37,692 bases of DNA from Dimorphilus gyrociliatus (lineage: Eukaryota; Animalia; Annelida): the NCBI GenBank assembly GCA_904063045.1, contig CAJFCJ010000184.1, positions 10,212 to 47,903 of the forward strand. The letters are read 5' to 3'. Below are positions 1 to 22,240 of this stretch, piece after piece. The notes below the pieces were generated by a model. It did not search any database, was not told the origin of the DNA, and saw only the letters and a list, made by a program, of their open reading frames with translations. Numbering within the stretch: the first letter of the stretch is position 1; each line of letters starts with the position of its first letter. The translations under genes were made by a program, and so were the position numbers.

Positions 1-1392
1 TTATAGAGTTTATGTTTCACGCAATATTGCTCAAGTACATCTATAATTGGAGTTTTTATGAACCATTCAAAAAGTATGAAAATTATTTTATTAGTGATGA
101 TGCTATTTTAGTGAAAACAGAGCCATAACGGATTTAAACACCGACCCCATCTATATTATGATGTGCTATTAAATTTCTATCAATTTTACATTTATTACAT
201 AATGATTTTTTTTAAAATATTAATTCAGTCAACCAAGAAAAAAAAGTACTCGGATCAATCATTTTTCTTGGAATTGTAATCTAGTTATTGATATTAAAGG
301 GAATATAGTCCAGCTCTAAGAGCCTAAAAGCAAATTTTATCAAATTTTTTTTCTGTTTATTCAAATTACCAAGCGGCAAGTTGCTATACATCATGATTAG
401 TATTTAGATGTAGTATATCTATAAAAATATGAAAACTTTAAAATACTATATTTTACAACATACAATGAAATATCAGACAGCTGAGTGTTAATTATAAAAA
501 ATATAACAATTATAACTCAGTTACATGAATTACCATTATTATTAAACAAGGTACAATAAAGGAATAATATCAGAATAGTGATGCTTTATTGCTACAATAG
601 AACATAAGATGCGAAATATATTCTTTTATTCAAGATTTTAATAGAAGAAACTATATAATAATAAATAGTCTCTTAAAAATATATTATAAATAGATAGAGC
701 AAAAAACGACTTATATGAACTCTTAGATTTAAATTGAGACAATTACAAAATAAGCCAGGATAAACCAAAAATTATACACAAAAAAAGTGAATATATAACA
801 CCATAAATAGAAATATGAATACTGTAAATACTTACGGATATTTTTCCTTTTATAACATGTTAAATTTTAATTCAGTAAATTAAAGACTAAATAAAACACT
901 CATTCTGTCATCAAGTAATGATTATAAAGATTAATTTTACGATACCAATAAAATTTTTTCTATTATTCCTTAGGAAATTTGAAACACATGAATTTTTTCA
1001 AAAATCAAAAAGAATCTACATTAAGTTGATGAATGGTAGATAGAATAATTCTGGTATTCTTAAAAATGACTATAATATGTCTTCTATTATACTTACTCTT
1101 TGAATAAATTAATGTGAATATAATTTTATAGATAACACGTTCATTGAATATATAGTTTTGGTAATATAAATTTGGTTCTTAATACAAAATTATTATGATT
1201 TTATATTAAATAAGGAGGATTGAAGGGGCTCATTATTAATGGAACATTTCGTAAAACTAACAAGTATCCTAAATCCGACTTTTCAATACCTTTAAACTGT
1301 TTTTAAATAACAAAGTAAAAAAAATGTAGAGCTAAATTGTAAAATATTCTATAATTATTTAAATAACTTTTAAAACAAATCATACCCCCTTT

Positions 1393-1995
1393 ATGACAAT
1401 ATTATATACTCAGATACTAGAAACACCTAATTTAAACTATTTGAATAATGTTTATTCAAAACATGGAAGCTTCCTTACGCAAAGTTCAAAAATAACATCA
1501 AATTTAAGAACATTTGTCTCTACAAATAAATTTGATAATTCCAAACTTTATTCTCACAAATTTAAAGAATATTTGTATTATTTTATGAAAACAGAAAGTC
1601 ATTTAATCTGTTTTATTAGTGATGACTCTACTAATAAAAGCATTGCGGATGTTTTCATGAAAAAAATAATTGATAACATCCGAATGAATCCTCATTATGT
1701 CACAAATAACAAAGAATTAAAGAGTTTAATGGATAGTTTTAATGATTACTATAATGATGAGGAAATAAAAGTCGAAATAATGAAAGCTAGAAACGTTGCA
1801 GTAGAATCTCTTAATAAATTACAAGGAAGAGGCGAGGTTCTTGAAAATTTAACAAATATTGCTGACGAATGGAGTACAAAGATTAAAAGATTCAAAAAGG
1901 ATGTAGAAAAGACACAAAATGGAAACTATTTTGTTATGGGAGGTGTTCTTTTATTTGTAATTTTTGTTTTCTATTTAATTTACTTAAGATTTTAG
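1393..1995 (+). CDS. Longin-domain R-SNARE (VAMP7/Sec22-like synaptobrevin)
   Basis: 200 aa ORF with an N-terminal longin-like region, an R-SNARE motif (ESLNKLQGRGEVLENL) and a C-terminal transmembrane helix (FVMGGVLLFVIFVFYLIYL). A CCCCC motif precedes the ATG. Confidence 0.85.
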   Translation: MTILYTQILETPNLNYLNNVYSKHGSFLTQSSKITSNLRTFVSTNKFDNSKLYSHKFKEYLYYFMKTESHLICFISDDSTNKSIADVFMKKIIDNIRMNPHYVTNNKELKSLMDSFNDYYNDEEIKVEIMKARNVAVESLNKLQGRGEVLENLTNIADEWSTKIKRFKKDVEKTQNGNYFVMGGVLLFVIFVFYLIYLRF

Positions 1996-3301
1996 TAATT
2001 TAACTATCTTGACCATTTTTTATATTGACTGTTCATCTTAAATCTAAATTTATTAAATAAAAGGGATATAAGGGGAATCTTCTCTTAATTCGTATAATTT
2101 ATACTTAAAGAGCCTCAATTATAAATAAATCTAGTTCATAGATATTATGATAGTATTTATAAATTGCGATGGCTTCCTATTTTTCCTTATACCTATACAT
2201 TACAAAAGATTAATATTTTAAGATTATTCTAATTTTATTAAACCTTTTTTCTTTCATTTTTGTATCCATATAAATTCTACTAAGTATAAATACAGCTCCC
2301 CCTTATTAAAACACCATTAATTTTTGAAATAACACTTTGATTTCGTAAAAATTCATTGATGGCTGTGTATAAATTCTTGAATCTGTAAAGGAATGTCTGT
2401 AATTTATGCGATAATAATCAAATATAATATCATTGCCTATATTAGGACTTTTTATAACAGCCTTAAGTGTTTTTAACTTGTAGTGATGGTGCAAATTACA
2501 GTAACAAGTATAAAAATAACTAAGCCCTCCTTATCTTGTGATTTTTCTCATAAGTATACAGTTTCTGCCTTCTAAATTGAACATTATCACAAAAAATAGT
2601 ACTATTTAAATCATATAAACTGAATTACTGCTATTAAAAAAAGTAAAAATATCAACAAGATAAACTGATGCGCCATCTAAAATAAATAAAACTTCCAAAT
2701 TTTATCTTTCATCCTTAAAATCAGTTTATTAAGCTAATTACTGGAAATTAATGAAGATTAGTCCAGGATTTCTACTATTATACTCTGAATTCTGTGTTTT
2801 CATTCCTTGTTTTTGAATGAATCTGAGGGCCGAGCTTTTCCTATGACTTATAGTGAAAGTATATCTTTATTGATGCCTACATATAATAAGCTTGTTATCA
2901 CCTGTCTCGCTGTTTTGGTTAAAAAGTGATCTTATCAGTAAAATATCTCACAAATAATCTTATTTTCATCACATTTATATATTTTTCGTAATAAATATAA
3001 AGTCGAATAATACAACGTCCTTATAAAAATAACACAAAACTCTTAAAATGATAAATAATAATAATAAAATTTTTGAACTTTTTGTCAAATCTTGACGAAA
3101 GAGATATTCCTACCAAATGACCATAAAATAATTCGTGTTAAATTGATATAAAGTTTTTCAACTAATATTTTTAATTATCAACATTCTAAAATTTTTAAGA
3201 GTATTTTGTCTACGATTTTTGATTGACTGGTTTACTTTTAATCGTGATATTATAATTAGAAATGTAAATAACCAATAACTTTCACGGTGATGTAGTGAAA
3301 C

Positions 3302-3880
3302 TTAGGGATGGCGTCTTGTATGATTATTTTTAGCAAAACCTATATTAGGAATATATGTATCTCCTATAATTAGTTTTATATTATCGTTAATGCGAAAATT
3401 ATGTAACTCTGTATATATTCTAATAAAATTTTTGTATATTTCTCTTGGTTGCTGTAGAGTATTTATACGTTCAAAGTTGACATTTTTTTGTTTAGTTTCT
3501 CTAAACAACACAAAAGTTTAAAGGTTTTAGCATTGTGGATTGTATTTTTATGCTGATATCGTATATCATCATTTAACTTAGTCCATTATCTGTTCCTTCC
3601 AATCCCTTTCTTAACATCGGGCTTTAAAGTTCTATTTAATCTCTTTATTAGTCCCCGAGATCGAGGACTCCTTGATTTTCCTGTTATATGGGATGCAATA
3701 AGTCTACTACATAACTCATTTATACTATTCTTAAAAAATTCATTGTTATTATTAGTATTTAGTATGACCCATGACCCTTCAATTCCATATACAGTGTGAA
3801 AAAAGGGATCTCCCATTTTTTTGTTGAATCATAAATAGCTTGGTTGTTTTATTTTGGATAACTATATATCAAATCTTTTA
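3302..3880 (-). pseudogene. Degenerate rve-type integrase remnant (Ginger/GIN-like or LTR-derived)
   Basis: ORF 3586..3816 reads ILNTNNNNEFFKNSINELC..HITGKSRSPRSRGLIKRLNRTLK, a decayed TDNGxEF...PQSQGxxERxNRTLK core. Downstream fragments (NTIHNAKTFKL; GDTYI..FAKNNHTRRHP) resemble integrase C-terminal regions. Catalytic residues are eroded. Confidence 0.6.
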
Positions 3881-4019
3881 TAACTCAATATTAACCCTTT
3901 TCTATATGTTTAATTTTCCTATTGATTTTTTTTCTAATTATCTTAATAAAGGACGTCTTTAAGACTGTAAAGATAGTGTTCGCTATCATTTATTTCAAAA
4001 TATGTCTTCTCTTTACTCT

Positions 4020-4660
4020 ATAAAGTAAAAAACAAACTATTTTTTTAAAAAAGCCAGTTTCTGACATGTTTCTACTGATGTTTTATTCCAATTATCTTTT
4101 ATAGCAACTTTTAATTTTTTTCTTATTTTAAATATTTTATTTCGGCCTTAATTATTGCTCACAAGTTTTCTATAGAGGTACAATCAGGAGATTGAGCAAG
4201 TTAGCTTTCAACTTTGATATCACACTCTTTATAAAATTTCTTTGCTAGCTTACATGTATGCTTGGGATCGTATCTTGTACAAAAATAAAATCGACTAATT
4301 AGATTTTATAGACTCGGTTAACAAACAAGCGCCTAGCATGTTGCAATAATACGGTGCATTTATTTTTATGTCGATAAATTTCAGTTCTCCAACACCATGA
4401 TATGAAAAACAGCCCCAAACCATCACAGAACCACCTCAAAATTTTATAGTCTTCTTGATATTTTGAATATCAAGTTTAGAAAACTTTGTACGCCATACTT
4501 TTAGACTTCTATCGGAAAATATAATAGTTTTTAGCGTGCGTTATGGTATTTACACCCACCTCATATTTGCATTGTATATCTAGCTTCAATATGCCTTGGT
4601 TGTAAGAGGAACTTAAAACATGGTGTAAAGGCTTTGATGTCCATTTTATTCAAGTAATTT
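4020..4660 (-). pseudogene. Old Tc1-family transposase remnant
   Basis: Minus-strand fragments IKAFTPCFKFLLQPRHIEARY, GGSVMVWGCFSYHGVGELKFID, DPKHTCKLA, AQSPDCTSIENL and WNKTSVETCQKL are colinear with the transposase at 5296..6156 and broken by stops and frameshifts. Confidence 0.85.
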
Positions 4661-4737: not shown

Positions 4738-5088
4738 GGTAAAATTTCTTTCAAGCCCCCCTTAAAATTGAATTATGTTACCCCCCCTAATGTCAATAAC
4801 AAAGTTGCAATTGCAAGAAAAAATGATTGGTTCGAACACTTTTCTTTCTTGGTTGTCTTAATTAAATATTTTGAAAAAAAAATCATTCTGTAAAAATGTA
4901 AAATTGATAGAAATTTAGTAGCACATCATAATATAAATGGTTTGATTTGAATGTGTAAATCAAATAAATGTGTTAAGAGTAAGGTTTCAATTCGTGATAG
5001 CTCTGTTTTCACTAAAATAAAAGCATCATTAAAAAAAATAATTTTTATAATCTTTGAATGGTCCATAAAAACTCCAATAATGGATATA
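4738..5088 (+). mobile_element. Merlin (IS1595/ISXO2-like) 5' fragment, interrupted by the Tc1 insertion
   Basis: Begins GGTAAAA, with an ATG at 4790 after a CCCCCCC run. Broken translation MSITKLQLQEKMIGSNTFLSWL..LKKKSFCKKCKIDRNLVAHHNINGLI*MCKSNKC..VSIRDSSVFTKIKASLKKIIFIIFEWSIKTP aligns to the N-terminus of the Merlin ORF at 7144..7425. It ends at the Tc1 TA site. Confidence 0.75.
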
Positions 5089-7538: not shown

Positions 7539-8025
7539 CATTTTTTTCTACAGGCTGTAAATACAAGATCTGTGAATAGAAACTCAAAATATACACTAAT
7601 AAGTAGCTTGATTGTAAAGGGGTAACCAACTAAGTATATATAAACGATATAGTAAATCATGATACTCGTTTTAATCCCTATTTACAAGAGCTACTATACA
7701 GCAAATCGAAGTTACTGGGATTTAATGTAAAATCCTATCCGACATCATCCAAAATACTAAATAACGATAATATTAATTTGTTAGCTGTAAAATTTTTATA
7801 TAAAAAAATCTAGACATGAAGCTTATACTAAGCTATCATCCTAATGATTTATTAAAATGAACTATGCTTTTATTTTCGGATATAATCATTTTTTTTAAGG
7901 ACTGGAAGTCTTCTTTCTCAATTTCTCTATTTTTATAAAAACATTGTTTTTAATTGAAGCAGGTCATATTTTAAAGGCAATGGAAAAATAGTGTCCGAGA
8001 AGTCTAAATTTTAATCCAACAACAT

Positions 8026-8157
8026 TTAAAAAAAAGCATTCAGTTTAAAATCAAGTTACATAAAAAATTCATCAACTAACTATCAAAGAAAATTTTCAGC
8101 AAACATCAACTAAAGCATCTGGGATATATCCCACCTTACCTTTCCAGGTATTGATTT
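8026..8157 (-). mobile_element. Solitary, severely 5'-truncated LINE 3' tail
   Basis: Diverged copy of the 11789-11915 tail (CATCAACTAACTATCAAAGAAAA..CAGCAAACATCAACTAAAGCATCTGGGATATATCCCACCTTACCTTTCCAGG). Confidence 0.85.
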
Positions 8158-8332
8158 TCATTATAACTTCTAGCTTTAATAATTAAAATCGATGAATGTT
8201 ATGACTACAAAAAATAATTATCCCCTTTATTTTTATCTTTATTATCATTCATCTGTTCTTGAAATAGGAATGGCTGTATGTTGTTAAAGTAAAATATTCC
8301 AGATAGTTTATCATCCTCTTTTATCATATTTA

Positions 8333-10378
8333 TTAAATTTTTGTCCATAGTTTTTGTAGAGACGTATATTTTCTCAAATTTATCATACTTTTCGTATAAA
8401 TTATATCCATATGGTTTAAAAACGTATTGTCGATTATAATACGTTCAATACCTTTGATTTTACTGATTGCAAATAGCCTACCAGAACCGATTCCACAAGA
8501 GCTCAAATTTAAAGTTTTAAGGTTTTTTAGTTTAGAAAAATTATGCATATCCATGTCGTGTAATTTATTATTATATCCTAAATTCAGAATCTCTAGACTA
8601 GTAGCACTATCTATTTTAGACACTGATTCCCTATCTAGATTGCAATTCTGTAAAGAAAGACTTTTTAACTTTGGAAGTTTGATTATATGATTTACTATTT
8701 TTGTAAAATGTTCGTTATTTAGACCCACATTAGATATAAATACACAACTGAGGGGTCTAAGCGAAGTGATATTGTTTAACCCATTCTTAATAATACAGTT
8801 ATTTATTCCAACACTTTTGAGCTTATGAAGTTTTGTAATGACATATAAATCCGTTATAATAGTATTACTTATACAATCTAGATATAAAACTTCTATTTCT
8901 TTTAACTCTATAATGTCCCTAATACTATTTCCTTCTACACTAAATCTAGAAATATATAAGTTCTTTAGATTTGGAATCTGTGCTATTAGTTTTAAATCAA
9001 GCTGAGTTAGAGACTTATACAAGGTTAAACTTAAGGACATTAGTGTTTTGGGAATATTTGTAAAAAAATCGTTGTGATTTAGCGAACAAATGATAAAACG
9101 TAAATCTTCAATATTCTTTAACGTTTTTAAATCATCTTGCATAAGAATATTGTAAGATATATTATTAGATTCAAGATTTATACTTTTTAGGTTTAATAGA
9201 GAAACCGTTTTCAAAAAAGGAAGTAATCTTAATAAATTGGTATCTTGAAGGTCCAAAGTTCTGAGAGCAACGAGATATTTTAGGGAGTTGTTATTGTTAG
9301 GTTTATAAAGTCTATCTAAGTAAGGAATATGACACCCTCTCAAGCTCAAATTTTCAAGTTTTTTTAGCTTTCTTACCCCCATAATATTTTCCTCTGTAAA
9401 ACAAAAATTGTAGCTTAAATCTATTGTTACTAAATTCTCAAGCACATAAATATTATCTAAAGCATCAGATTCTGGTAAACTACACTTACTAAGACGCAAA
9501 ATTCTTAACATTTTTAAATTAAGAATCGAATACAAAACTTCAGTAGTAATAGCATTATTCCCGCTCAGGTCTAAATTCACAAGTTTTGTTAAACTAAAAC
9601 AAACCTCCAATAAGAACCCACCAGAATTTATTTCACAATCACGCAAACTGAGACTCTCAAGTTTATCATCTCCTAAAATACTTTCTATTAAAGTATTCTT
9701 TATATCTGCATTTTCATTTAAATTTATCGTTTTAACACTTTTTAAATATAGTAGTACTCCACTCAAGAAGTAAGTAGAAAGGCGACAGTGTGATAGATTT
9801 ATATTTTCCAGCATTTCCAACTTTACAATATCATACAAATCTGCTTGATTTATATTATAATTATGTGATAAATTAAGCACCTTCAAGCTTTTTAGCTTGT
9901 GAATTCCTATTAAACTTCCAGGTTTGAGCTGACAACTAGAAAGATTGAGTGAAATTAAGTTATATAATTGAAATATATTTATCATATCTTTTTTTTCTAA
10001 CTCTGTATTTTTCGAAATTGATAAACCACAGATATTAGATTTTCTCTTTATATTCGATAAAAAGTTCGCTTCTAAAGAAGAGTTGTTTAAAAAAACTATT
10101 CTTATATTCTTTAAGTCGAAAATAGACGTTAAACCATTTTTTGTTAAATTATGTGTATGCAAATGGCAGCTTGTATTATAATAAGATATAAAGTAGTAAA
10201 TACTGCAAATTTTGACAAAACTAAGATTATTAAAAAAACATAAGGGATAAAAACTAGATATTTTTGTTATCCATATATGGAATATTAGAAACGAAATGGC
10301 AGTTATTTCTAACCAACGAGATATAATAACAGGGCAAGTAGAAGTAGGATCCAAAGAGGATTTAATGAATAAAAGCAT
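8333..10378 (-). CDS. Leucine-rich repeat protein; 5' end abuts a retroelement tail
   Basis: 681 aa ORF with more than 20 LxxLxLxxN/C repeats of ~24-25 aa. The annotated ATG (10376-10378) lies inside the retroelement tail sequence, so the true start is uncertain. Confidence 0.85.
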   Translation of the reverse strand: MLLFIKSSLDPTSTCPVIISRWLEITAISFLIFHIWITKISSFYPLCFFNNLSFVKICSIYYFISYYNTSCHLHTHNLTKNGLTSIFDLKNIRIVFLNNSSLEANFLSNIKRKSNICGLSISKNTELEKKDMINIFQLYNLISLNLSSCQLKPGSLIGIHKLKSLKVLNLSHNYNINQADLYDIVKLEMLENINLSHCRLSTYFLSGVLLYLKSVKTINLNENADIKNTLIESILGDDKLESLSLRDCEINSGGFLLEVCFSLTKLVNLDLSGNNAITTEVLYSILNLKMLRILRLSKCSLPESDALDNIYVLENLVTIDLSYNFCFTEENIMGVRKLKKLENLSLRGCHIPYLDRLYKPNNNNSLKYLVALRTLDLQDTNLLRLLPFLKTVSLLNLKSINLESNNISYNILMQDDLKTLKNIEDLRFIICSLNHNDFFTNIPKTLMSLSLTLYKSLTQLDLKLIAQIPNLKNLYISRFSVEGNSIRDIIELKEIEVLYLDCISNTIITDLYVITKLHKLKSVGINNCIIKNGLNNITSLRPLSCVFISNVGLNNEHFTKIVNHIIKLPKLKSLSLQNCNLDRESVSKIDSATSLEILNLGYNNKLHDMDMHNFSKLKNLKTLNLSSCGIGSGRLFAISKIKGIERIIIDNTFLNHMDIIYTKSMINLRKYTSLQKLWTKI

Positions 10379-10485
10379 TTAATTAAACATCAACTTACAT
10401 AAAAAACTCATCAACTAACTATCAAAGAAAAATTTTCAGCAAACATCAACTAAAGCATCTGGGGATATATCCCCACCTTACCTTT
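10368..10485 (-). mobile_element. 5'-truncated LINE tail (type A)
   Basis: Near-identical to 11790-11907, including the GGGGATATATCCCC palindrome and ACCTTACCTTT. Confidence 0.9.
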
Positions 10486-10496
10486 TTAAAATTTTT

Positions 10497-10572
10497 TAAA
10501 ATAAAAGCATTTAATAAACCACATAACCTACATAAAAAACTCCCCACTACTGCTAAGAAAAAGTTTCAGCTA
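10497..10572 (-). mobile_element. 5'-truncated retroelement tail (type B)
   Basis: AATAAAAGCATTTAATAAACCACATAACCTACATAAAAAACTCCCCACTACTG matches the tail variant at 16388-16455. Confidence 0.8.
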
Positions 10573-10604
10573 CACTTAAAAATTTTTTTAAAATATTTTT
10601 TTTT

Positions 10605-11665
10605 AAATAAAAGCATTTAATTAAACATCAACTTACATAAAAAACTCATCAACTAACTATCAAAGAAAAATTTTCAGCAAACATTAACTAAAGCATCTGG
10701 GGATATATCCCTGCCATACCCTTCCGGGCTTCGACTCTCGGAGGTCTTGAGGAGTGGCTATTACCACTCCCCACAGTTTGCGGACAGGCCTGCTCCCTTC
10801 AGAGCTAGCACCCACCCATTCCACATACACCTTGCGGTGCCTGCAGCGCGACACCTGTGCATCTCGAGTTACGGCAACAGCTGCACAGGCCACCGAGGAC
10901 TATCGGCATCCCGTTCCCCTCCTAGGAACACCTCCATCCAGCTACCCGAAGACAGAGGTTTTTGGTTGTTGTCTGACTCTTAGCTACTCATAATCACTGC
11001 TTACTGGACTTAGGTCTCTGCCAGTTATACTCAACATCTACACTTCAATCAGCTTGCCTATCTTCATGGCAAGGAGCTTAATCATTGCATCTCCATTCCT
11101 AACTCGTTCTGGCGAGCGGGTCCAGCTAGGCCATCCAGATACCTCTTCTATTGCCAGACTCCGCTATGATACCTACCTCTACATGGTACTCCTGCCGACC
11201 ACTTCTACTTTGTTTGCGGCGCTGACCTAGGCAGGGTCTAGGGCGTTCCTTTGCTTGGGCAATCCCCGGCCGTGGGTCGTGAGGACTTCGACCCAGTCGT
11301 GCAGATACCTTCCCATCCTGAGTGATCCTACCGTCCCTGTGTCAGGGGTGTCTACTCATACCCAACCACAGGCAGGCTCACTGACTTCCCTGTCTCTGCC
11401 TCATACACAAGCCTTCACTAAGCTCTTCAGCTCATCTGCCTTCGAGTCCCTGCATGGTACTCTGCACACCCCACCTCACTACTAGTCACGCATCCTACTA
11501 CGCTAGTTTTATAGTATCTTACCAAGGAGTATCCTCACAGTATCGACTCAGACCCAGATAGATTGTGGGTATCTGGGGATGCCTAGTATCCATGCTTGCA
11601 CTGTCATTAGCCGTCTCCCGACGTTACCAAGACGAACCACGTGGAGGTTACAGTGCTGTCGTCTC
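10605..11665 (-). mobile_element. Non-autonomous non-LTR element (SIDE/SINE-like), copy 1, with ribozyme head and LINE-shared tail
   Basis: ~1060 bp, GC-rich, near-identical to 16385-17428, with no credible long ORF. It shares with the LINE the 3' tail, CTCGGAGGTC, and the ~40 bp CACCGAGGACTATCGGCATCCCGyTCCCCTCCTAGGA (LGGERDADSPR on the minus strand). Confidence 0.85.
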
Positions 11666-11760
11666 AGCTCTTCAGCTCATCTGCCTTCGAGTCCCTGCAT
11701 GGTACTCTGCACACCCCACCTCACTACTAGTCACGCATCCTACTACGCTAGTTTTATAGT
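11421..11760. repeat. 95 bp direct repeats (11421-11515 and 11666-11760) flanking the ribozyme segment
   Basis: AGCTCTTCAGCTCATCTGCC...CGCTAGTTTTATAGT occurs twice here and once more at 17191-17285. Confidence 0.95.
11598..11665 (-). ncRNA. HDV-like self-cleaving ribozyme, intact copy
   Basis: Minus-strand RNA: GAGACGA(P1) CA GCACUGU(P2) A ACC(P3) UCCACGU(L3) GGU(P3') UCGUCUU(P1') GG(P1.1) UAA CGUC-GGGA-GACG(P4) GCUAAUG(J4/2, catalytic C) ACAGUGC(P2'). A G1-U wobble lies at the predicted cleavage site. Folded by hand. Confidence 0.9.
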
Positions 11761-11937
11761 AAAAAAATTTTTAAAAAAAATTTTTTTTAAAATAAAAGCA
11801 TTTAATTAAACATCAACTTACATAAAAAACTCATCAACTAACTATCAAAGAAAAATTTTCAGCAAACATCAACTAAAGCATCTGGGGATATATCCCCACC
11901 TTACCTTTCCAGGCATTGGTTCTCGGAGGTCGAATAT

Positions 11938-13047
11938 TTAGCTCTCCTGATTAGAAAGGCTATAAGCCCTTCTCTTCAGGATAGCTTGAAGATACCTGGC
12001 TGTTGAGGCCAGGACCAAATAACACCGAGGACTATCGGCATCCCGCTCCCCTCCTAGGAGCACCCCGACTGTGGTATCACGATCGAGGTTTTTGTTAAGT
12101 ATCGAAGAGTATATTTCTATACTCCTCCTATCCTCTTCGTATCCAGGACAATCAAGAAGTAGGTGATAGATATCTTCTTCTACTCCTCTCTTGCACACTA
12201 GACACTTAGAGTAAAATTCACTGGATACCTTTCCTAGCATGACTAGGCGAGGTACAAAGTGGAATGCTCCTGCCCTCAACTTGAGGAGAGCATACCATCC
12301 AGCGCCTCTGTACCTCAAGGATGCTCTGGGCACGTTCACATCAGCGACTCGCCACCTATCTCTCATCCTTGAGATAACGCTAGAGTGTCTAGCGATTTTC
12401 CTACTCTCCAGACTCCGCTTGGCAATAGAAGGAGCTTGCCTTGCCTCACTGTCCAGTGCAGTAGGCGCATACCTTTTGAGCCATCGGGTTGTACGCGTCA
12501 CCCATGTTGTTTTCTTTGCTTTTATAGGATTATCAATGAAGCTACTCATGTATGTACGTGAGTATCTCCACTTCCTATAGGCCCTGGTTCGCATCCTGGC
12601 AGCGAACACATCGACCATCTCAATGCATAAGTCCTTATACATTGATAGTCTGTTGAACATCTTTGAGACATTCATTGCCATTGCTACTCCGTTGTCCATG
12701 ATCCTCTGCAGTCTTCTGCATCGAGTGGAGTTCATACCAATCATTTCTACACCATAGGTTACGATTGGCATGAGCACTCCTCTGAGAACCCTTACCTTGT
12801 GGTACATTCCAATGGAGGGATTACGCAAGAGTGTTTGACACTGGAGCAGTGCCAATCGTCCCTGCTCCACTCTCCTATCCAGATGAGCATCGTCACCAAG
12901 GTCATTGGATATCTGGATACCAAGGTAGGTATAGGACTGCACCATCGGAATCACTTGATTACCATAGTGTATGTCACTATCCACCAGTGGTTGGGACGCT
13001 CCTACTATCATGTAGCCACTCTTTGCGCCATTGACACCCATCCCCAT
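11938..13047 (-). CDS. LINE ORF C-terminus (RT thumb region and CCHC zinc knuckle)
   Basis: SYTYLGIQI, YGVEMIG and the CLVC..H..DC motif, continuing the RT ORF. Confidence 0.9.
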   Translation of the reverse strand: MGMGVNGAKSGYMIVGASQPLVDSDIHYGNQVIPMVQSYTYLGIQISNDLGDDAHLDRRVEQGRLALLQCQTLLRNPSIGMYHKVRVLRGVLMPIVTYGVEMIGMNSTRCRRLQRIMDNGVAMAMNVSKMFNRLSMYKDLCIEMVDVFAARMRTRAYRKWRYSRTYMSSFIDNPIKAKKTTWVTRTTRWLKRYAPTALDSEARQAPSIAKRSLESRKIARHSSVISRMRDRWRVADVNVPRASLRYRGAGWYALLKLRAGAFHFVPRLVMLGKVSSEFYSKCLVCKRGVEEDIYHLLLDCPGYEEDRRSIEIYSSILNKNLDRDTTVGVLLGGERDADSPRCYLVLASTARYLQAILKRRAYSLSNQES

Positions 13048-14252
13048 ATGCTACACCACTGTTGTAGCTTAATGAGGTTGAATGCCATATCCTCAGCGCT
13101 TTCTGCTAGCAGTACGGTGTCGTCGGCGAAGAGCAGTCCAGGTACTCTTTCAGCCAACCCATCTACCTCTACACCTCTCATTCCTGAGAAGATGTCATTA
13201 ATATAGAGATTGAATAGGAGGGGAGAGAGTGGACAACCTTGTCTCAGCCCCACAGTATAGTCGAAGCTATCTGTCATAGAGTCCCCTATTCGTACTCTAC
13301 ATTGCACATTCCTGTACAATCTGCTAACAAATCCGCGGTAGCATGCAGAGACTCCAATATCTGCCATCTTACCAAGCAGTTTGTCGTGAGGCACCATGTC
13401 ATAGGCTTTCTTAAAGTCTATGAATACTACAAAGGTGTCCTTACCTTTTATTTTTCTTCTCTTTAGAAGCTCTGTGAGAGTAGATGCTTGTGTTACGCAT
13501 TCCTCGAGACTTCTGAATCCTGCTTGGTATCTGCCTAGGAGATTATTCTCTTCCACCTCTTGTCTCATTTTTATTTCTACTATCTTAGTAGCAATCTTGA
13601 GCTGGGAAGAGATTAAGGATATCCCCCTGTAGTTGGAAGGATCACTCCTCTCTCCTTTCTTGAAGATAGGAACAATGATGCTAACATTGTCCCTAGAGGG
13701 AATGTCTTGGTTAATCAGTTCATTCATCTGAGAGACCATTGCCTTAGTCATCAGGCTTCTTCCCTCTCTATCACCCTCCAGGAGCTTATAGAACTCTGAT
13801 GGTATCTCGTCTGCTCCTGGCGCCTTGTTTCGCGGTGTTACTTTGATTGCTAAACGTACTTCAGGCCATTTTACGGTGATAGATCCTTGTATTACTGGGA
13901 TGTCCCTATATTGACCTTGTGAGAGTGACTTGAAGTAGCTGTACCAGGAGTTTAGGATTTGATCCTTGGTGACTGCTAACTTATTAGTCTGTGGATCTCT
14001 GATAGCAGCATTACTGACTGCACCTCTTACAGCTCCTCTGAAAGAGTTGATCCACCTCCACATGTCCCGAGACCTGTTGGCAGTCGTAAGGTCTATGCCT
14101 TTCTGGACATACCTATCCCAGTTTTTCTTTCGACAGGCTAGTATGAGTTTTTTGGATCTAGTCCATAGTTCCTCATACTTAGCTTTGTCTTCTTCGGTGT
14201 TCAATCCTGATGCTCTCAGCTTCCTTCGCTGGTCAATGCATCTGATTGTCAC
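13008..14252 (-). CDS. LINE reverse transcriptase domain (fragment of a frameshifted polyprotein)
   Basis: 414 aa ORF containing the non-LTR RT motifs. It joins ORF 11938..13047 by a frameshift at a G-run near 13040 (QQWCSIWG/MGVNGAKS). Confidence 0.95.
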   Translation of the reverse strand: MTIRCIDQRRKLRASGLNTEEDKAKYEELWTRSKKLILACRKKNWDRYVQKGIDLTTANRSRDMWRWINSFRGAVRGAVSNAAIRDPQTNKLAVTKDQILNSWYSYFKSLSQGQYRDIPVIQGSITVKWPEVRLAIKVTPRNKAPGADEIPSEFYKLLEGDREGRSLMTKAMVSQMNELINQDIPSRDNVSIIVPIFKKGERSDPSNYRGISLISSQLKIATKIVEIKMRQEVEENNLLGRYQAGFRSLEECVTQASTLTELLKRRKIKGKDTFVVFIDFKKAYDMVPHDKLLGKMADIGVSACYRGFVSRLYRNVQCRVRIGDSMTDSFDYTVGLRQGCPLSPLLFNLYINDIFSGMRGVEVDGLAERVPGLLFADDTVLLAESAEDMAFNLIKLQQWCSIWGWVSMAQRVAT

Positions 14253-14429
14253 CTTATCAAGGATAACTGTCCTCTTCTCCTCTTTGAAGTCATAGAGGTT
14301 GAGATTATTCAGTATCCTCTTTGCAGTGGTACCATCTCTGGCTCATCTGTCCAGTGCTTATGATGGATGATCCTTTCCCACTGCTGGGCCATTCTCTTCC
14401 TACTTACTATACTCTTTGGCTGTTCAGCA

Positions 14430-15258
14430 GGTACTTGAAGCCCTGTGATCTTGATTAGAACTGGTTTATGATTGGACAGATCCCAGTTCTCGATCACTTG
14501 TTGACTAATAGGGCTTTCACCTTTAGTCTGGACAAGGAAGTCTATAGGAAATCCTCGTCTGTTCCCGTCGACTCTCCATCAAGTCCTCCTTGTCATTGTG
14601 AGGATCTCAGGGTTAGCAAGGGTTATTTGCTCCGCTAATAACCGCTTCTGCACAGTCTCAGGCTTGGAGTTACAGTCCCCTACGGTGACCACCTCGTCAA
14701 ACCGATCCTTGTGCTTCCTCAGCAACGCACCAAGTCTCTTGTATGCCTGCTTGCGGTTATCGAGTCCATGAGGAATGTATACATTGACACACAGTACCTT
14801 CTTAGGTCTTGTGTCAAGAGCAACTGCTATGAAATTGCTATCTACATGGACTAGGGTGACTGGTTCCTAATCCGGTTCCTGACAGCAAGGAATAGTCCTC
14901 GCTTGCCCAGGTCGTCCTCTTTGTCTGAGGAGTATATGGTGTAGCCACCTATCTTAGGTGTTCTGCCTGCCCATAGAGTCTCCTGTATGGCTACAATGTC
15001 AGGCTTCTCGCGCGACAGGTATAGCCATATCTCAGACAATTTGGTTCGGATGCCATTGATGTTATAGCTAAGGATCTTGAGAGTTTCGATCTCTTGCTTA
15101 GGACATCGTGTGGTCTTACTCCGACCTTTGGTGGACTCCTTGATCCACCAATTCTCTCTTCTAGCTAAGGCTTTTAGCCTATCATTGCTAACAAGAGGCT
15201 GTTTGTTGACTATTACATCTAGTCTTTGGCAACCATTTGGTTGCCTTATTCGCTTCAC
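14430..15258 (-). pseudogene. LINE apurinic-like endonuclease domain, frameshifted
   Basis: Motifs are split across ORF 14851..15258, an unlisted frame (VNVYIPHG..VTVGDCNS) and ORF 14309..14497 (WDLSNHKPV). Confidence 0.85.
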
Positions 15259-15791
15259 CTTGGCCTGCTTGAGGCCGAGGTGTTTTCAAGCTTGGAGCTC
15301 ACCAGGTCCCTTTGACCCATGGGAGTCCCCACAAACAATACTTTCTTCCAGTCTCTAGGCTCTTATTCCCAGCCCCTGGTAAGCCAGGCTGGCGGCCATT
15401 CATGATCGTCGGGCTGAGTCAACCTTCTCAGCCCGGTAAAAGAACCTTCTGGGTTCTCTAGAACCCTTCAGGGGTGGCCTTGTCCAACACCCTGGAAAAT
15501 GCTATGTTTGGGCCTCTTTGGCCCATTAAGTAGACATTGTGGCTCCTCGCCCTTCGAGCCACTCCTCGAGCTGGGCCCTTTTGGGTGCCTCAGCATGACG
15601 AAGCCTTCATTGATCAGCGCAGCATAAACCCTCTTTATTGTGAGGTTAGCTGCTCTGATCTCCAGCTTGTCCATCCATGTCCTCACCTGACAGGTCATGG
15701 ATATTCTTATTTTCTTTTTCTTTAGAATCTCCATCACCTGTTCAGGTGAGGTAAAGACTGGTACCTGCAGATATGCATACTTCCAGTATGA

Positions 15792-16384
15792 NNNNNNNNN
15801 NNNNNNNNNNNNNNNNNNNNNNNNNNNNNNNNNNNNNNNNNNNNNNNNNNNNNNNNNNNNNNNNNNNNNNNNNNNNNNNNNNNNNNNNNNNNNNNNNNNN
15901 NNNNNNNNNNNNNNNNNNNNNNNNNNNNNNNNNNNNNNNNNNNNNNNNNNNNNNNNNNNNNNNNNNNNNNNNNNNNNNNNNNNNNNNNNNNNNNNNNNNN
16001 NNNNNNNNNNNNNNNNNNNNNNNNNNNNNNNNNNNNNNNNNNNNNNNNNNNNNNNNNNNNNNNNNNNNNNNNNNNNNNNNNNNNNNNNNNNNNNNNNNNN
16101 NNNNNNNNNNNNNNNNNNNNNNNNNNNNNNNNNNNNNNNNNNNNNNNNNNNNNNNNNNNNNNNNNNNNNNNNNNNNNNNNNNNNNNNNNNNNNNNNNNNN
16201 NNNNNNNNNNNNNNNNNNNNNNNNNNNNNNNNNNNNNNNNNNNNNNNNNNNNNNNNNNNNNNNNNNNNNNNNNNNNNNNNNNNNNNNNNNNNNNNNNNNN
16301 NNNNNNNNNNNNNNNNNNNNNNNNNNNNNNNNNNNNNNNNNNNNNNNNNNNNNNNNNNNNNNNNNNNNNNNNNNNNNNNNNNNN
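15792..16384. other. Assembly gap (593 N)
   Basis: Run of N characters. Confidence 1.
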
Positions 16385-17367
16385 TTTAAAATAAAAGCAT
16401 TTAATAACACATAACCTACATAAAAAACTCACACTACTATAAGAAAAATTTCAGCAAACATCAACTAAAGCATCTGGGATATATCCCTCCATACCTTCCG
16501 GCTTCGACTCTCGGAGGTCTTGAGGAATGGCTATTACCACTCCCCACAGTTTGCGGACAGGTCTGCTCCCTTCAGAGCTAGCACCCACCCATTCCACATA
16601 CACCTTGCGGTGCCTGCAGCGCGACACCTGTGCATCTCGAGTTACGGTAACAGCTGCACAGGCCACCGAGGACTATCGGCATCCCGTTCCCCTCCTAGGA
16701 ACACCTCCATCCAGCTACCCGAAGACAGAGGTTTTGGTTGTTGGTCTGACTCTTAGCTACTCATAATCACTGCTTACTGGACTTAGGTCTCTGCCAGTTA
16801 TACTCAACATCTACACTTCAATCAGCTTGCCTATCTTCATGGCAAGGAGCTTAATCATTGCATCTCCATCCTAACTGTTCTGGCGAGCGGGTCCAGCTAG
16901 GCCATCCAGATACCTCTTCTATTGCCAGACTCCGCTATGATAACTACCTCTACATGGTACTCCTGCCGACCACTTCTACTTTGTTTGCGGCGCTGACCTA
17001 GGCAGGGTCTGGGGCGTTCCTTTGCTTGGGCAATCCCCGGCCGTGGGTCGTGAGGACTTCGACCCAGTCGTGCAGATACCTTCCCATCCTGAGTGATCCT
17101 ACCGTCCCTGTGTCAGGGGTGTCTACTCATACCCAACCACAGGCAGGCTCACTGACTTCCCTGTCTCTGCCCATACACAAGCCTTCACTAAGCTCTTCAG
17201 CTCATCTGCCTTCGAGTCCCTGCATGGTACTCTGCACACCCCACCTCACTACTAGTCACGCATCCTACTACGCTAGTTTTATAGTATCTTACCAAGGAGT
17301 ATCCTCACAGTATGACTCAGACCCAGATAGATTGTGGGTATCTGGGGCGTGCCTAGTATCCATGCTT

Positions 17368-17428
17368 GCACTGTCATTAGCCGTCTCCGACGTTACCAAG
17401 ACGAACCACGTGGAGGTTACAGTGCTGT
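17368..17428 (-). ncRNA. 5'-truncated HDV-like ribozyme lacking the P1 5' strand
   Basis: Same core as 11598-11658, but GAGACG is replaced by A-rich sequence (AAAAAC), so P1 cannot form. Confidence 0.75.
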
Positions 17429-17507
17429 GTTTTTTATATTTCAAGATCCTCACAGTATGAACTCAACCCAGATAGATTGGGTATCTGGGGTGCTAGTATC
17501 CATGCTT

Positions 17508-17574
17508 GCACTGTCATTAGCCGTCTCCCGACGTTACCAAGACGAACCACGTGGAGTTACAGTGCTGTCGTCTC
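17508..17574 (-). ncRNA. HDV-like ribozyme directly downstream of the LSU rRNA
   Basis: Identical to 11598-11665 except for one missing C in P3 (GUAACUCCACG versus GUAACCUCCACG), which may be a homopolymer error. Confidence 0.8.
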
Positions 17575-17629
17575 ACCATGCGTTCATTTTATCTCTCTAG
17601 ATGAGCTTTAATTTCTACAATGTGTAGGA

Positions 17630-17883
17630 TAGAACGACGGTAAGGACTGCGCCGTGCCTCAAATGCTCGCTTGCGCTCGCACCTTACAGCAGGCCGTCCA
17701 TGTCGTGTCGTTTTCACGTCCGCCTTCCGACCTTGGGCCCGGTTTCTAGCTTAGAGGCTTTCAGCTATACTCCGGTAGACGTAGCTCCGCGACATGCCCG
17801 TCCGGACAATCGCTCCACCAGTGGTCTCATAGGTCCTTCCTTTCGTACTACTCCCTACTCCCCGCAGTCGTCTGTAGGTAGGA

Positions 17884-17930
<47 letters not shown>

Positions 17931-18515
17931 ATTAGTGGGTGAACAATCCAACACTTCGGCGCTCCTGCACGCCGATGGTAGGAAGAGCCGACATCGAAGA
18001 ATCAAAAAGCCGCGTCGCTTTCTGCGCTCGACGGCCACAAGCCAGTTATCCCTGCGGTAACTTTTCTGTCACCCACCTCACAACTGCGGTGTCAAGGTGG
18101 GATCCCTAGGCCTGGGTTTCCCCGCACGTACTCATCATCGTACGCTCAAGCACTCTCAAGCCCTTATGCTCCACGCGGGTTTTCCCGTCCCGCTGCGAGT
18201 ACCTTCGGTCAGCTGCGTTCTGCTCCTGCAGCTGTGCCGCCCCAGCCAAACAGTCCATCTAGCATCCATCCCCGAGGGTGTGCCATGAGCTCCGACGCGT
18301 AGTGGTCTTTCACTTCCGCGTTGCCGCTCCCACCTCCCTACATCACGTCGCAGCTCACCGCTCTGCTACACTACTGTGAAGCTCAACAGGGTCTTCTTTC
18401 CCCGCCTACATCGCCAAGCCCGTTCCCTTGGCACGTGGGTTCGCTAGTCTGCAGGTAGGGACAGTGGGAATCTCGTCTTTCCATTCATGCGCGTCACCAA
18501 TTAAGTGACGAGGCG

Positions 18516-18554
<39 letters not shown>

Positions 18555-20270
18555 GACCCGCGCTTAAGAGAGTCTCCTCTCCTTCACGTAACGAGCACCG
18601 GGCAGAAATCACTTCGTATCCCTTCACGAAGCTATGTTTTTATTAAACAGTCAGATTCCCCATGCCACCTTGAGTTCCATAAGAACCAACACTTCTCCCG
18701 AAGTTACGCATCCATTTTGCCGAATTCCCTTACCTGCGTTCAACATACGCCAGAGGCTTCTCACCTTGGAGACCTGTCGCGGTTTAAGTACGGTCCCGGG
18801 GCCCGCTCGCGCGTCCTTTTCACTGCTGGGCCCGGCGGCCGCAGGGTCGCCCCCTGCCAGCGGCCCGCGCCCTTCGCTGACTGACTCATCTCCACGCGCG
18901 CGCCGCACGCACCAGAGCCGGATGCTCTGCGCGGCCGGACGGCCCATGTCGAACGCCCGATCTCCCGTCGCCGCTCGGCCCCGAGGGATAGGACTCTTAA
19001 CCTATTTCTCTTTCGCTACAGACCGTGCTCCGTCGCTTAGCACCGCCTCACTCCCTTCTGATCTACATCGCCAGGGAAAACCTTCTCCTCCTCGGCCTTC
19101 GCCATTCTCAGACGAATTACAACTACTGCCACCAAGATAAGCGCTGCCGGCACCTCCACCGCACCTCGCAGTGCGCCTTCCACAGTCCCGGCACGCCCCC
19201 CTACCCGCGGGCGCGCATCGGTCGACGCGTCAGCACCGTCAATTTTAGGGCCAGCTGAATTCCGTAGGTACGTTGTAACACGTTTCTTACCGGCTGCCGA
19301 CTTTCATGGCCACCGCCCTACCGTCTTCATTCACCTACCGCCTTCCCTCTCTGCCACGCCGTTCGGTACCTTATCGCGCCGCCAGGTTGAATCCTCTTCG
19401 CCAGTCCTGCTTACCAAAACAAGCCCACTACGCTCGTCCAAGTCCGCGCTGCGTATGCCACGCCGCGCTGAGCACGTTCGGAGTTCGTTCGTCGCCTTAA
19501 GGCTAAATGATCCTAGTTCTACCGCACTCCTCTTCCACTCGCGCGCTGTCCTGAGAGACATTTCGGGGGGAACCAGCTACCAGACTGTTCGATTGGTCTT
19601 TCGCCCCTACACCCAGTTGACGTCAAAGAGTTGCATATCATTACGACTCGCCACCTCCAGCGCATTTTCATCCGCCTTCGTAGCCACCAGGCATAGTTCA
19701 CCAGTCTATCGGGTCTTAACCACGCCTCTCCACCGCTCTCGCGCGCGTCCGGGGCTCTCTCCCTTCCACTCGCTGCGTAGTTAAACTCCTTGGTCCGTGT
19801 TTCAAGACGGGACCGACTCTGTCGGCTCCACATGCAATTTCACTTTTTCATCATATTCTGTCTTCGGTCACCCTACTAATACGCTATCGGTGTCCACCTG
19901 TATTTAGCCTTAGATGCGCACTGCCACCTCTTCACGCTGCACTACCGAGCAACGCTACTCACTTCCTAGCGCGGCGTCCCTACGGGGCTAACACCCTCTC
20001 AGGCCGGCCCTTCAAGGCTCGCTCGGGCCGCCGCTCCGCTGACATCTCGCCGGGGCGATTACACCGTCGGGCTCCTTCCTCTTCGCTCGCCGCTACTGGG
20101 GAAATCCTCGTTAGTTTCTTCTCCTCCCTTTACTCATATGCTTAAATCAGAGGGGTTCTCGTCACTACTGACCATTCAGGCACGCGCCGTCCTCGCTGCC
20201 GCTCCGGCGCCTCGCTTCCTGCCGCGCCCTTCCTCGCCAGTGGACCCAAACGATCCCTTGCATGTGGCTC
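17630..20270 (-). rRNA. LSU rRNA with fused 5.8S region (ends approximate)
   Basis: 5.8S-like start CAAGGGATCGTTTGGGTCC..GAGGAAGGGCGCGG, then ACCCCTCTGATTTAAGCATAT, CCCGTCTTGAAACACGGACC, CTCTTAAGGTAGCCAAA, the peptidyl-transferase region and the sarcin-ricin loop. No ITS2 is apparent. Confidence 0.97.
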
Positions 20271-20289
20271 TTCTATCTCCATTCCTCGC

Positions 20290-21639
20290 TGATCCAACGA
20301 CAGGTTCTCCTACCGTTGCCTTGTTACGACTTGTATCAGATCTAGAACCCTGCGCTCACTCACTCGTTGTTCGTTCGCACCTGATTCCATCTTCGATAGC
20401 GACGGGCGGTGTGTACAAAGAACAGGGACTCATTCATCGCTCCATACTGAGACAGCGATTACTAGCAATTCCTCGTTCCTGCGCCCCTTCCAGGGCACAT
20501 TCCCTCTCGATCGCATTTCTCTCTCCTTCCTTCCTCCTGCGACCACTGTAGTGCGCGTGCAGCCCAGTCCATCTAAGGGCATCACTGACCTGTTCTTGAC
20601 CCCTCCTTCCTGCGCTTGGCGCGCCAGTCACTCTCGTCGAGGGTCTCACTAATTACCAGACTTAACCCAAGGATCACTCCATTTGTCGTTAACGGCCATG
20701 CACCACTTTCCGACCTATCGCGTACCACGCTCATCCGGTCGTCGGCACTGGTAAGCTGTCCCGCGTTGAGTCAAATTAAGCCGCACACTCCACTCCTTGT
20801 GGTGTTCTTCCGTCAATTTCCTTTAAATTTATCGCTTGCGCGCGTACTCTCCCCGTAGCTCTACTCTAGATTTCTCGTCCCCGTCACACTCGTAACAGGG
20901 CGTAAGCATCGTTAACTGCTGGAACTACTACGGTATCTAATCGTATTCGATACTCCAGCCTACGTCCTTGATCATCGGACTCGCCCCTGGCCAGCGCTTT
21001 CGCCTCAGTTTCTCCTAGGCAGGTCATCGAATTTCACCTCTAGCTGCCTAATAGACTGGCCCCTGGCCGCTCCTCATCCTCTACCGTTCTGGGACATTCC
21101 ACCCCTTGATCGGATGTTTTATACACCAGTTGGCTAGGCAGACTACGGACCTTTTAATCGCAGCAAAAATCATAGACACCCCTGGAGCTGGTATTACCGC
21201 GGATGCTGGCACCAGACTTGACCTCCAGTTACTAGCATCTTGTTTACAAATCCTTCTAAACAAACGTTTCTTCACTACCGCCCTGCTTGCAGGCTTCGGT
21301 AAGTTTCGTGCCTGCTGCCGTCCTTGGACCTGGTAGCCGTCTCTCAGGCTCCCTCTCCGGAATCAAACCCTAATTCCCCGTACCCGTATTCGTCTAAATA
21401 GGCCTTTACCCTACTTACTAACTGATGGGCTGACTTCTTACTCTCCGCCGCTCCGCTATACCTGTAGCCCACTGGCTACACGCCTTGCGTATTCCCCTCA
21501 GTTTCCCGAGGTTGTCCGCCCGCGCAGATCAAATCAAAGTCCGTTACTGAGCCGTACGCCGCTCCCCCGAAGGTTCGCTTACACATGCATGGCTAAATCT
21601 GTGAAACTAGCGTCCACGTCAGACAGAATCAATCTGATT
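20290..21639 (-). rRNA. SSU rRNA (~1.35 kb, microsporidian-type)
   Basis: 5' ATCAGATTGATTCTGTCTGACGTGG, the 530 loop GTGCCAGCATCCGCGGTAA, GTACACACCGCCCGTC, and 3' AAGTCGTAACAAGG..GTAGGAGAACCTG..GGATCA. Confidence 0.98.
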
Positions 21640-22240
21640 CTCTTCGTAGTTTACACTACACTCTCCGCACTCCGAGCTCCTCACCTTTCACCAAGGCCGT
21701 CCCGCTCACTACACCTATTACCTTCACTTTTACTGCATATTCGTCAATTTAGTATGACACTCGAAAGAGTTTTTGAAAAGTACTTTTTTCCTCCTCATTA
21801 TAGGCGAATTTTTTAGTTACATCTGTCTGCGATTCACTACGAGCATCCCAAATTTCCGAATCCGAGTTTTCGGGTATGAGGTCAGCACCACTACTGATCA
21901 GAACACTCTATATGCCACGATCTAAAAGCTGTCACAAAATTGACAGTATTTTTTGACACAATATGACACATATCGCGCACAATAATAATACACATATGTA
22001 GGTAGTGTATAGTAGATGTTGTGTTGTTGTGTATTTACATTTGTGTAATATGAGGTGGTATACTTAGGTAGATACGTTTTAAAACATAAAAATTTTCAAG
22101 CAAGTAGGGGTTAGAATAATTTTAAAAAATCACAGAATATATCATGTATATCTTGTTTTAGTATATGAAGCTGTATAATTTATATTTTTTAAGGTTAAAG
22201 TATAATAAGAATTTTTAAAATAAATTGAAAATAAAAAACA

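Follow-up and report, generated by a model that had tools for sequence, protein, structure and literature searches.

The stretch of DNA analysed here, called the window below (37,692 nucleotides, C184:10212-47903 of the 78-Mb Dimorphilus gyrociliatus assembly), contains a ribosomal RNA gene unit of the microsporidian type, and the 3' flank of this unit is occupied by a train of retrotransposon sequences. The train comprises copies of a non-autonomous element of about 1.07-1.1 kb, headed at its 5' end by a ribozyme of the hepatitis delta virus (HDV) type, and a long interspersed nuclear element (LINE) with which the short element shares its 3' tail. It is proposed, with a confidence only a little above even, that the two constitute a pair of retrotransposons inhabiting the 3' flank of microsporidian ribosomal DNA (rDNA), expressed by rDNA read-through, released by the ribozyme and copied by the LINE enzyme. 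The proposal is built on the anatomy of the locus, its linkage to rDNA, the fold of the ribozyme, the tails common to both elements and the comparatively young age of the short one.

According to the proposed scheme, transcription of the rDNA would run beyond the 3' end of the large subunit (LSU) rRNA gene into the train. Cleavage by the ribozyme on the 5' side of its first base, G1, at a distance of 59 nt from the LSU end, would give the element RNA a defined 5'-OH end and leave the rRNA gene intact. The LINE reverse transcriptase would recognise the shared tail and copy the element RNA by target-primed reverse transcription. New copies would enter A/T-run sites at the ends of resident copies, a putative target rule expected to give co-oriented head-to-tail trains, 5'-truncated tails and template-jump 5' junctions. 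Read-through, self-cleavage and use of the LINE enzyme are suggested by the anatomy taken together with the precedents of R2, the short internally deleted elements (SIDEs) and L1Tc (PMC3414825, PMC3774820, PMC3185411).

The window contig is probably DNA of a microsporidian parasite inside the assembly of the worm, an assignment with which both the rRNA type and the AT-rich flanks, rich in leucine-rich repeats (LRR), agree. A second rDNA type occurs on contigs C5, C164 and C223 as tandem units of about 9.1 kb, the conserved cores of which are 81-86% identical to the rDNA of the window. This second type is presumably that of the host animal, and therefore the window contig would derive from a different organism, the parasite. 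The GC content amounts to 55-59% in the rDNA, 44-48% in the 10.4-17.6 kb stretch and 21-30% in the surrounding DNA. The parts of the locus, established by BLAST module mapping and direct reading, are given below in minus-strand order.

21640-22147, minus strand: candidate promoter or 5' external transcribed spacer, the approximately 508 nt upstream of the small subunit (SSU) rRNA gene, common to the rDNA units.
20287-21639, minus strand: SSU rRNA gene, microsporidia type (Rfam RF02542, 1178 bits, full model).
17634-20178, minus strand: complete LSU rRNA gene (Rfam RF02543, 1490 bits, model positions 1-3401).
17575-17633, minus strand: spacer of 59 nt from the LSU to the cut site (59/59 with one indel in C222; first 42 nt conserved in C137).
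17508-17574, minus strand: LSU-proximal copy of the HDV-like ribozyme, G1 at 17574, 98.5% identical to the intact copy, failing the descriptor described below.
17429-17507, minus strand: partial post-ribozyme segment (68 of 81 nt), then the A-rich filler cttgaaatataaaaaac (sequence reading).
17368-17428, minus strand: second ribozyme copy, beginning at ribozyme position 7 (Rfam HDV-F-prausnitzii, 19.2 bits).
16385-17367, minus strand: non-autonomous element 1, with 5' segment, X segment, body and B-type tail, stopping at the gap (body 98.5% and tail 88% identical to element 2).
15792-16384, no strand: assembly gap (paralogous counterparts C137 25835-25111 and C222 6717-6032).
11790-15791, minus strand: readable part of the putatively L1/Tx1-like LINE, frameshifted (open reading frames, Pfam, homologs).
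11670-11761, minus strand: 92-nt copy of the element-internal X segment, upstream of the intact ribozyme (100% identical to 11425-11517).
11598-11665, minus strand: intact HDV-like ribozyme, first base 11665 (Rfam 25.9 and 25.6 bits, descriptor match).
10602-11597, minus strand: non-autonomous element 2, with 5' segment, X, body and A-type, LINE-like tail (module mapping).
10368-10570, minus strand: two 5'-truncated tails, B-type at 10570-10496 and A-type at 10485-10368 (module mapping).
8025-8159, minus strand: orphan 5'-truncated tail, about 170 nt beyond the stop of an LRR open reading frame (ORF) and outside the range marked in the first-pass annotation (module mapping).

This arrangement (SSU, LSU, 59-nt spacer, ribozyme, element 1, gap, LINE, ribozyme-headed element 2, 5'-truncated tails) confirmed the order and the co-orientation from the SSU to 10368 that the first-pass annotation had described; every part of the train, dead tails included, is oriented as the rRNA genes. 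That even dead tails keep this orientation suggests a target with polarity, located where resident copies end in an A/T run. The cut site at 17574, which had been placed about 55-65 nt past the LSU end, was measured to lie 59 nt from it, and the canonical R2 site is empty as claimed, the target TTAAGGTAGCCAAACGCCTCG being unbroken at 18509-18529 of the LSU in a pattern match. An A/T run separates the LINE from the 92-nt X fragment at 11670-11761, and the fragment looks like a template-jump product.

The linkage of the train to rDNA, likewise part of the earlier claim, is supported by the assembly. All three microsporidian rDNA units (C184, C222 and C137) are followed by a train, and the matches to the ribozyme (6), to the element and to the tail (15) in the 78 Mb were confined to four contigs, namely these three, which carry rDNA, and C181. 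Each copy found is situated on the downstream side of an rDNA unit, within about 10 kb of it, or else, on C181, beside a gap; there the LINE abuts a 3.5-kb gap that hides its upstream side, and its downstream flank is 94% identical to that of C222. Since the parasite was only partly assembled, the copy counts are lower bounds. No telomere repeats were seen on the contig parts examined.

Parts of the stretch are also contained in 20 public runs from 12 studies, many of them marine. Four public runs were compared over 16385-17700 in the form of assembled contigs, from which RNA ends and strands are unreadable. In run X4, filed under another organism code, a contig joins the LSU end (17613) via 25 different nt to the element at 17428. 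The same run holds 164 element contigs with a summed depth several-fold that of the LSU end, which suggests many more element copies. In run X6, GAGACG-headed ribozymes are preceded by the element-internal positions 17239 and 17318, and run X8, a marine metatranscriptome, contributed a single contig of 848 nt covering 16417-17246. Part of the element is present in four metatranscriptome runs of the study to which X8 belongs and is absent from two small DNA runs of those samples, a weak hint at expression.

These data bear on the suspicion that the LSU-element junction, or the train as a whole, is a mis-join of the assembly, which can be given hardly any credence. Gaps do occur inside the trains (window 15792-16384, C222 2006-2037, C181 70172-73711), but three contigs share the junction, C137 is free of gaps throughout its train, and the contig from the independent run bridges LSU and element. 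The junction is not a chimera, because this public run, too, joins the LSU 3' end to the element. The other rDNA copies, C222 and C137, carry the junction as well, a comparison with other copies being one of the checks that the first-pass annotation had named.

The gap of the window is unreadable and is spanned only in C137 and C222, the latter being gap-free in the stretch that matches it; therefore the continuity from element to LINE is read from these two paralogs. The edges of the gap are joined by 723 nt in C137 and by 684 nt in C222. The counterpart consists of a second partial tail and an A-rich LINE 5' region beginning gagtaatgcaatgc, which in both contigs reads as a Lys-rich start of ORF1 and continues into the GC-rich LINE.

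The 68-nt sequence at 11665-11598 has the full nested double-pseudoknot fold of the HDV ribozymes in the canonical order. P1 is formed by positions 1-7 and 31-37 (GAGACGA/UCGUCUU), with a G1-U37 wobble closing at the cut site, P2 by 10-16 and 62-68 (GCACUGU/ACAGUGC), P3 by 18-20 and 28-30 (ACC/GGU, with L3 being UCCACGU) and P4 by 43-46 and 51-54 (CGUC/GACG). P1.1 pairs G38G39, the GG after P1, with C22C23, the CC of L3, and J4/2 (GCUAAUG, positions 55-61) contains the candidate catalytic C within C-U-A-A. An HDV-like descriptor demanding P1, P1.1, P2, P3, P4 and C-N-R-A in J4/2 was matched once in the window (11665) and at C222:7756, C137:27060 and C137:26898, in each case at the head of an element and nowhere else, and gave 0 matches in 300 random 10.7-kb sequences read on both strands (about 6.4 Mb). 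These properties fit an HDV-like ribozyme predicted to be self-cleaving. The Rfam HDV models, which ignore the P2 and P1.1 pseudoknots, scored 25.9 bits for RF02682 (threshold 44) and 25.6 bits for RF00094 (threshold 50). The z-scores of minimum free energy folding of the ribozyme copies (-0.21, 0.04 and -1.12) are uninformative because the method cannot model pseudoknots. A scan of JGI metagenome contigs with the ribozyme core as an exact pattern gave no match.

The ribozyme copies are identical over positions 9-67, and they differ in completeness. The LSU-proximal copies of C222 and C137 are intact and lie about 60 nt past the LSU. In the window, the copy at 17574 is short of one C in P3/L3, fails the descriptor for this reason and is probably impaired, unless the missing C is an error of the assembly. 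The copy at 17428, which also has a 1-nt deletion in the P4 loop, begins at position 7; therefore it has no P1 5' strand and cannot cut. Two element-heading ribozymes had been announced for the window, one of them with its cut site at 17574; only the other, at 11665, is intact.

The short element had been taken for a SIDE in the sense of an internally deleted LINE, which the comparison of modules did not sustain. Its homology to the LINE is limited to the 3' approximately 330 nt, made up of a 42-nt block 95% identical to the end of ORF2 and a tail of about 145 nt; for the 5' approximately 740 nt, of which the ribozyme is a part, no match exists in either the LINE or the rDNA unit. Because only the 3' part matches, the element is not an internally deleted LINE, and it appears to resemble more closely the R2/R1 hybrid SIDE of Drosophila. 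The tail of element 2 is 93% identical to that of the LINE, so that an autonomous LINE of the same genome shares its 3' end. Two tail types occur on near-identical bodies, B in the three LSU-proximal copies and A in the LINE and element 2, and tail swapping is therefore indicated. The partial tails are truncated at differing points (positions 45 and 80). Around element 2 there is a possible target duplication of 15-20 nt in an A/T run, of a complexity too low to count. The 23-mer common to LINE and element had no match in an exact-pattern scan of JGI metagenome contigs.

A different origin of the 5' part would be that ribozyme and GC-rich body are the native 3' external spacer of the rDNA, containing a host signal for 3' processing of the pre-rRNA, and that the short element is a retro-copy of this spacer with an acquired LINE tail. 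The equal distance of the ribozyme from the LSU in three units would be explained in this way, as would a body of 45-60% GC, similar to the rDNA and unlike the genome (about 25% GC), and a LINE that itself has no ribozyme. SINE (short interspersed element) heads captured from the RNA genes targeted by a LINE provide a precedent (PMC4494074). Nevertheless the explanation is improbable: two of the four LSU-proximal copies are defective, the junctions with their partial duplications and filler resemble insertions, the body is dissimilar to the rDNA unit, the LINE is equally GC-rich, and the unit recurs elsewhere, beginning exactly at the ribozyme.

In an organism with a much reduced RNA-processing machinery it is conceivable, though very improbable, that the host has co-opted the retroelement-borne ribozyme to terminate the pre-rRNA by cutting about 60 nt past the LSU. 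Every rDNA unit would then depend on this cut for the release of the rRNA 3' end, and the train would be tolerated for its sake.

In the proposed pair, the enzyme would be supplied by the LINE, the readable part of which contains the following segments.

15468-15791, minus strand: ORF1 remnant (ORFs).
14851-15258 and 14309-14497, minus strand: pieces of the apurinic/apyrimidinic-type endonuclease, APE (ORFs, Pfam).
13008-14252, minus strand: reverse transcriptase, RT (ORFs, Pfam).
11938-13047, minus strand: C-terminal part with Cys/His knuckle (ORFs, Pfam).
11790-11931, minus strand: 3' tail (module mapping).

The APE domain was recognised over the whole profile in the C222 copy (Exo_endo_phos, 1.3e-14) and the RT domain by RVT_1 (1.7e-29), which agrees with the APE type assigned to the LINE at first; zf-RVT was weak (0.005) near the C-terminus. 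Neither a restriction-like endonuclease of the R2 type nor an insertion at the 28S site TTAAGG/TAGCCA was found, the endonuclease being of the APE type and the R2 site intact. The best database relatives are 34-38% identical and comprise Smittium proteins named Tx1/LINE-1, proteins of the microsporidia Amphiamblys and Nucleospora, and proteins of brown algae; among the best-scoring full-length protein matches no relative exceeded 38% identity. A PDB search could not tell L1 apart from R2 and assigned no LINE clade. A lead to an L1/Tx1-like LINE comes from how the best matches are named. Exact-protein look-ups of the two longest LINE ORFs matched no contig.

A search of the LINE 5' region gave no ribozyme, and the idea that the LINE carries one had to be given up, the ribozyme being present only on the short element. 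All four LINE copies (C184, C222, C137 and C181) are frameshifted, each at different places. They differ by 2.3-4.5% in substitutions, of which about 70% are transitions. The private changes form a star-like pattern, with 52-72 in each full-length copy and 20 in the shorter one of C181, and show a mild GC-to-AT bias (110 versus 73). The elements (10368-17633) have a GC content of 44-60%, against about 25% for the genome; together with the lean of the private LINE changes from GC to AT, this would agree either with an arrival in fairly recent times or with GC-biased conversion beside the rDNA.

Some further observations concern the LINE and its relatives. The ORF1 region contains a near-perfect hairpin, its stem about 30 bp long, which is kept in all three copies (window 15678-15754, minus strand; L007:1-75; L001:5921-5995); it scores as Rfam mir-392 with 37-41 bits against a threshold of 62 and is probably not a microRNA. 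A 1-kb LINE fragment, truncated at both ends and AT-decayed, lies at 24508-25556 of C228 (L004), with 72% nucleotide and 45-60% amino acid identity and no rDNA match on the contig. In L011, from an unrelated public assembly, a 30%-identical APE- and RT-containing LINE (493-4472) ends 317 nt before a complete 5S rRNA gene (4789-4906) and is possibly a 5S-targeting relative. The contigs of three distant relatives contained no ribozyme, and one of them had a 5S gene nearby.

The manner in which the copies spread was examined at the junctions and in the divergence of the parts. The 5' junction differs in every element copy: a single unit in C222, a unit followed by 12 nt of X and a second unit in C137, a truncated unit followed by A-rich filler and a unit from position 7 in C184, and 92 nt of X ahead of element 2. 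Such differences are typical of template jumps or short insertions, and template-jump 5' junctions have been described for R2 (PMC3414825). The element copies differ by 1.1-2.3%, the adjacent LINE copies by 3.4-3.95% (Fisher p 0.002, 0.04 and 0.0004). Element 2, which lies beyond the LINE, is only 1.1-1.8% from the other copies; the short element therefore moved at a time when the LINE copies were already divergent. The youth of element 2 cannot be put down to an rDNA-centred conversion gradient, because this copy is on the far side of the LINE.

Homology between the units extends from about 508 nt before the SSU, with the limit between C184 and C222 at 22147/12331, to the end of the LINE tail, and past the trains the flanks of C184, C137 and C222 are unrelated. 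Downstream of the LINE, C181 (65724-67864) and C222 (1-2097) agree over 2.1 kb of flank with 94% identity, and their LINE copies are the closest pair (2.3%); these contigs are either diverged haplotypes or the outcome of a recent segmental duplication. Block duplication or gene conversion explains part of the spread, as seen in the flank common to C222 and C181, and the signs in junctions, tails and divergence point to real transposition. From the comparison of these sequences we conclude that both retrotransposition and duplication or conversion acted. The retro-copying of a whole rDNA unit from an uncut read-through transcript, an idea prompted by the shared block ending at the LINE tail, was considered and rejected: no target-site duplication was visible by eye in the flanks of C184 and C222, and the shared block includes the approximately 508 nt of presumed promoter.

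If duplication had acted alone, the pair could be a fossil, in that one old insertion of element and LINE beside an ancestral rDNA unit was spread by segmental duplication and homogenised by rDNA-centred gene conversion, the elements being not expressed from the rDNA or having a promoter of their own, and the later differences being local rearrangements. This history is possible, though on balance unlikely. It would account for the block that every unit shares, which begins 508 nt ahead of the SSU and reaches as far as the LINE tail, for the identical element-to-LINE order in three units, for the 2.1-kb downstream flank common to C222 and C181, for the broken state of every LINE copy and for the star-like private changes with their mild GC-to-AT bias; moreover, the identity of the LINE between C137 and C184 drops with the distance from the rDNA from 98.1% to 93.8%. 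On the other hand, no such gradient along the LINE exists between C222 and C184, and element 2 is beyond the LINE and yet as close to the other copies as noted above. The differing tail truncations (45 and 80) and the orphan tail at 8159-8025, the LSU-proximal junctions, of which four different ones are known, including one from a separate data set, and the unrelated flanks past the trains of C184, C137 and C222 are also difficult to reconcile with it.

The proposal of an rDNA-expressed pair has its own difficulties. The Rfam scores of the ribozyme are below the gathering thresholds, and its near-invariance gives no support by covariation, 0 changes in 59 nt being not significant; two of the four known LSU-proximal ribozymes are defective (one C missing in C184, no P1 strand in X4). 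The LINE is devoid of a ribozyme, and frameshifts occur in each of its four copies; as all assembled copies are broken, the system may now be inactive in this strain. The only RNA contig, that of X8, stops inside the element, short of both ribozyme and LSU, and could derive from DNA. The divergence of the rDNA 5' flank, estimated by eye at about 1.6%, is similar to that of the element, and therefore an rDNA-centred conversion gradient could mimic the youth of the LSU-proximal copies. Finally, three trains have the same element-to-LINE order, C222 and C181 share a flank, and the counts of copies come from a partial parasite assembly as lower bounds.

An ORF of 681 amino acids with leucine-rich repeats is present at 8333-10378 on the minus strand (LRR_4 2e-17, LRR_8 2.5e-13). 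Its listed ATG falls within the last retroelement tail, and the train may have cut off or displaced the true start of this gene. The far end of the window likewise reads as LRR coding sequence.

The retrotransposons of rDNA studied so far, R1 and R2 among them, insert into the rRNA gene itself, and the gene copy that receives them is inactivated. If the proposal is correct, a pair dwelling in the spacer would draw on the very strong transcription of the rDNA at no cost of a gene to the host, which would be a new niche, and the short element would be the first ribozyme-headed retroelement we have found reported for Microsporidia. For this group, a review of rDNA transposons mentions only MITEs (miniature inverted-repeat transposable elements) in Nosema bombycis, and a full-text literature search retrieved no paper on microsporidia with an HDV-like ribozyme. 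Ribozyme-headed APE LINEs and hybrid SIDEs as such are already known. We could not find a description of a position just past an intact LSU, of a microsporidian host, of a ribozyme present only on the dependent partner or of a train at every rDNA unit. The 68-nt ribozyme is small and easily tested.

Among known systems, R2 and its SIDEs (PMC3414825, PMC3774820) share with the present pair the residence in rDNA, the co-orientation and the 5' HDV-like ribozyme that would free the element from the rRNA co-transcript. R2, however, is equipped with a restriction-like endonuclease, interrupts the 28S gene at a fixed position and possesses its own ribozyme, whereas here the endonuclease is of the APE type, the R2 site is empty, the gene is whole and the LINE is devoid of a ribozyme. 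The L1Tc/NARTc elements of the ingi clade of trypanosomatids (PMC3185411, PMC4035085) are similar in that an APE LINE family and its non-autonomous partners have an HDV-like ribozyme at the RNA's 5' terminus, which acts on co-transcripts; unlike the present case, LINE and partners have the ribozyme in common and are dispersed in polycistronic RNA polymerase II units without a tie to rDNA.

Mutsu is a Tx1-group LINE with the 5S rRNA as target, and we know of no element of this group in the rDNA 3' spacer or with a ribozyme-headed partner. The Tx1-group LINEs Keno, in U2 snRNA genes, and Tx1-Mar with its SINEU (PMC4494074, PMC4640811) combine, as here, an APE LINE, insertion at multicopy RNA genes and a dependent short element with a foreign head. 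The L1/Tx1-like relatives of the present LINE and its 5S-adjacent relative recall this group, the placement being by the names of matches.

The closest resemblance is to the R2/R1 hybrid SIDE of Drosophila, which combines an R2 ribozyme with the 3' end of R1, an element of the APE type (PMC3414825). Like the present element, it is non-autonomous, is located in rDNA, has an HDV-like ribozyme at its 5' end and, attached to it, the 3' end of an APE-type LINE, shows template-jump 5' junctions and is thought to use the machinery of the APE LINE. The element described here differs in being situated after the LSU and not inside it, in its microsporidian host and in its partner, L1/Tx1-like and not R1; furthermore, no R2-type ribozyme donor is known in the present genome, and the 5' part of about 740 nt has no known source. 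It would represent a second, independent fusion of a ribozyme head with an APE-LINE tail, and as such bears on the birth of non-autonomous retroelements.

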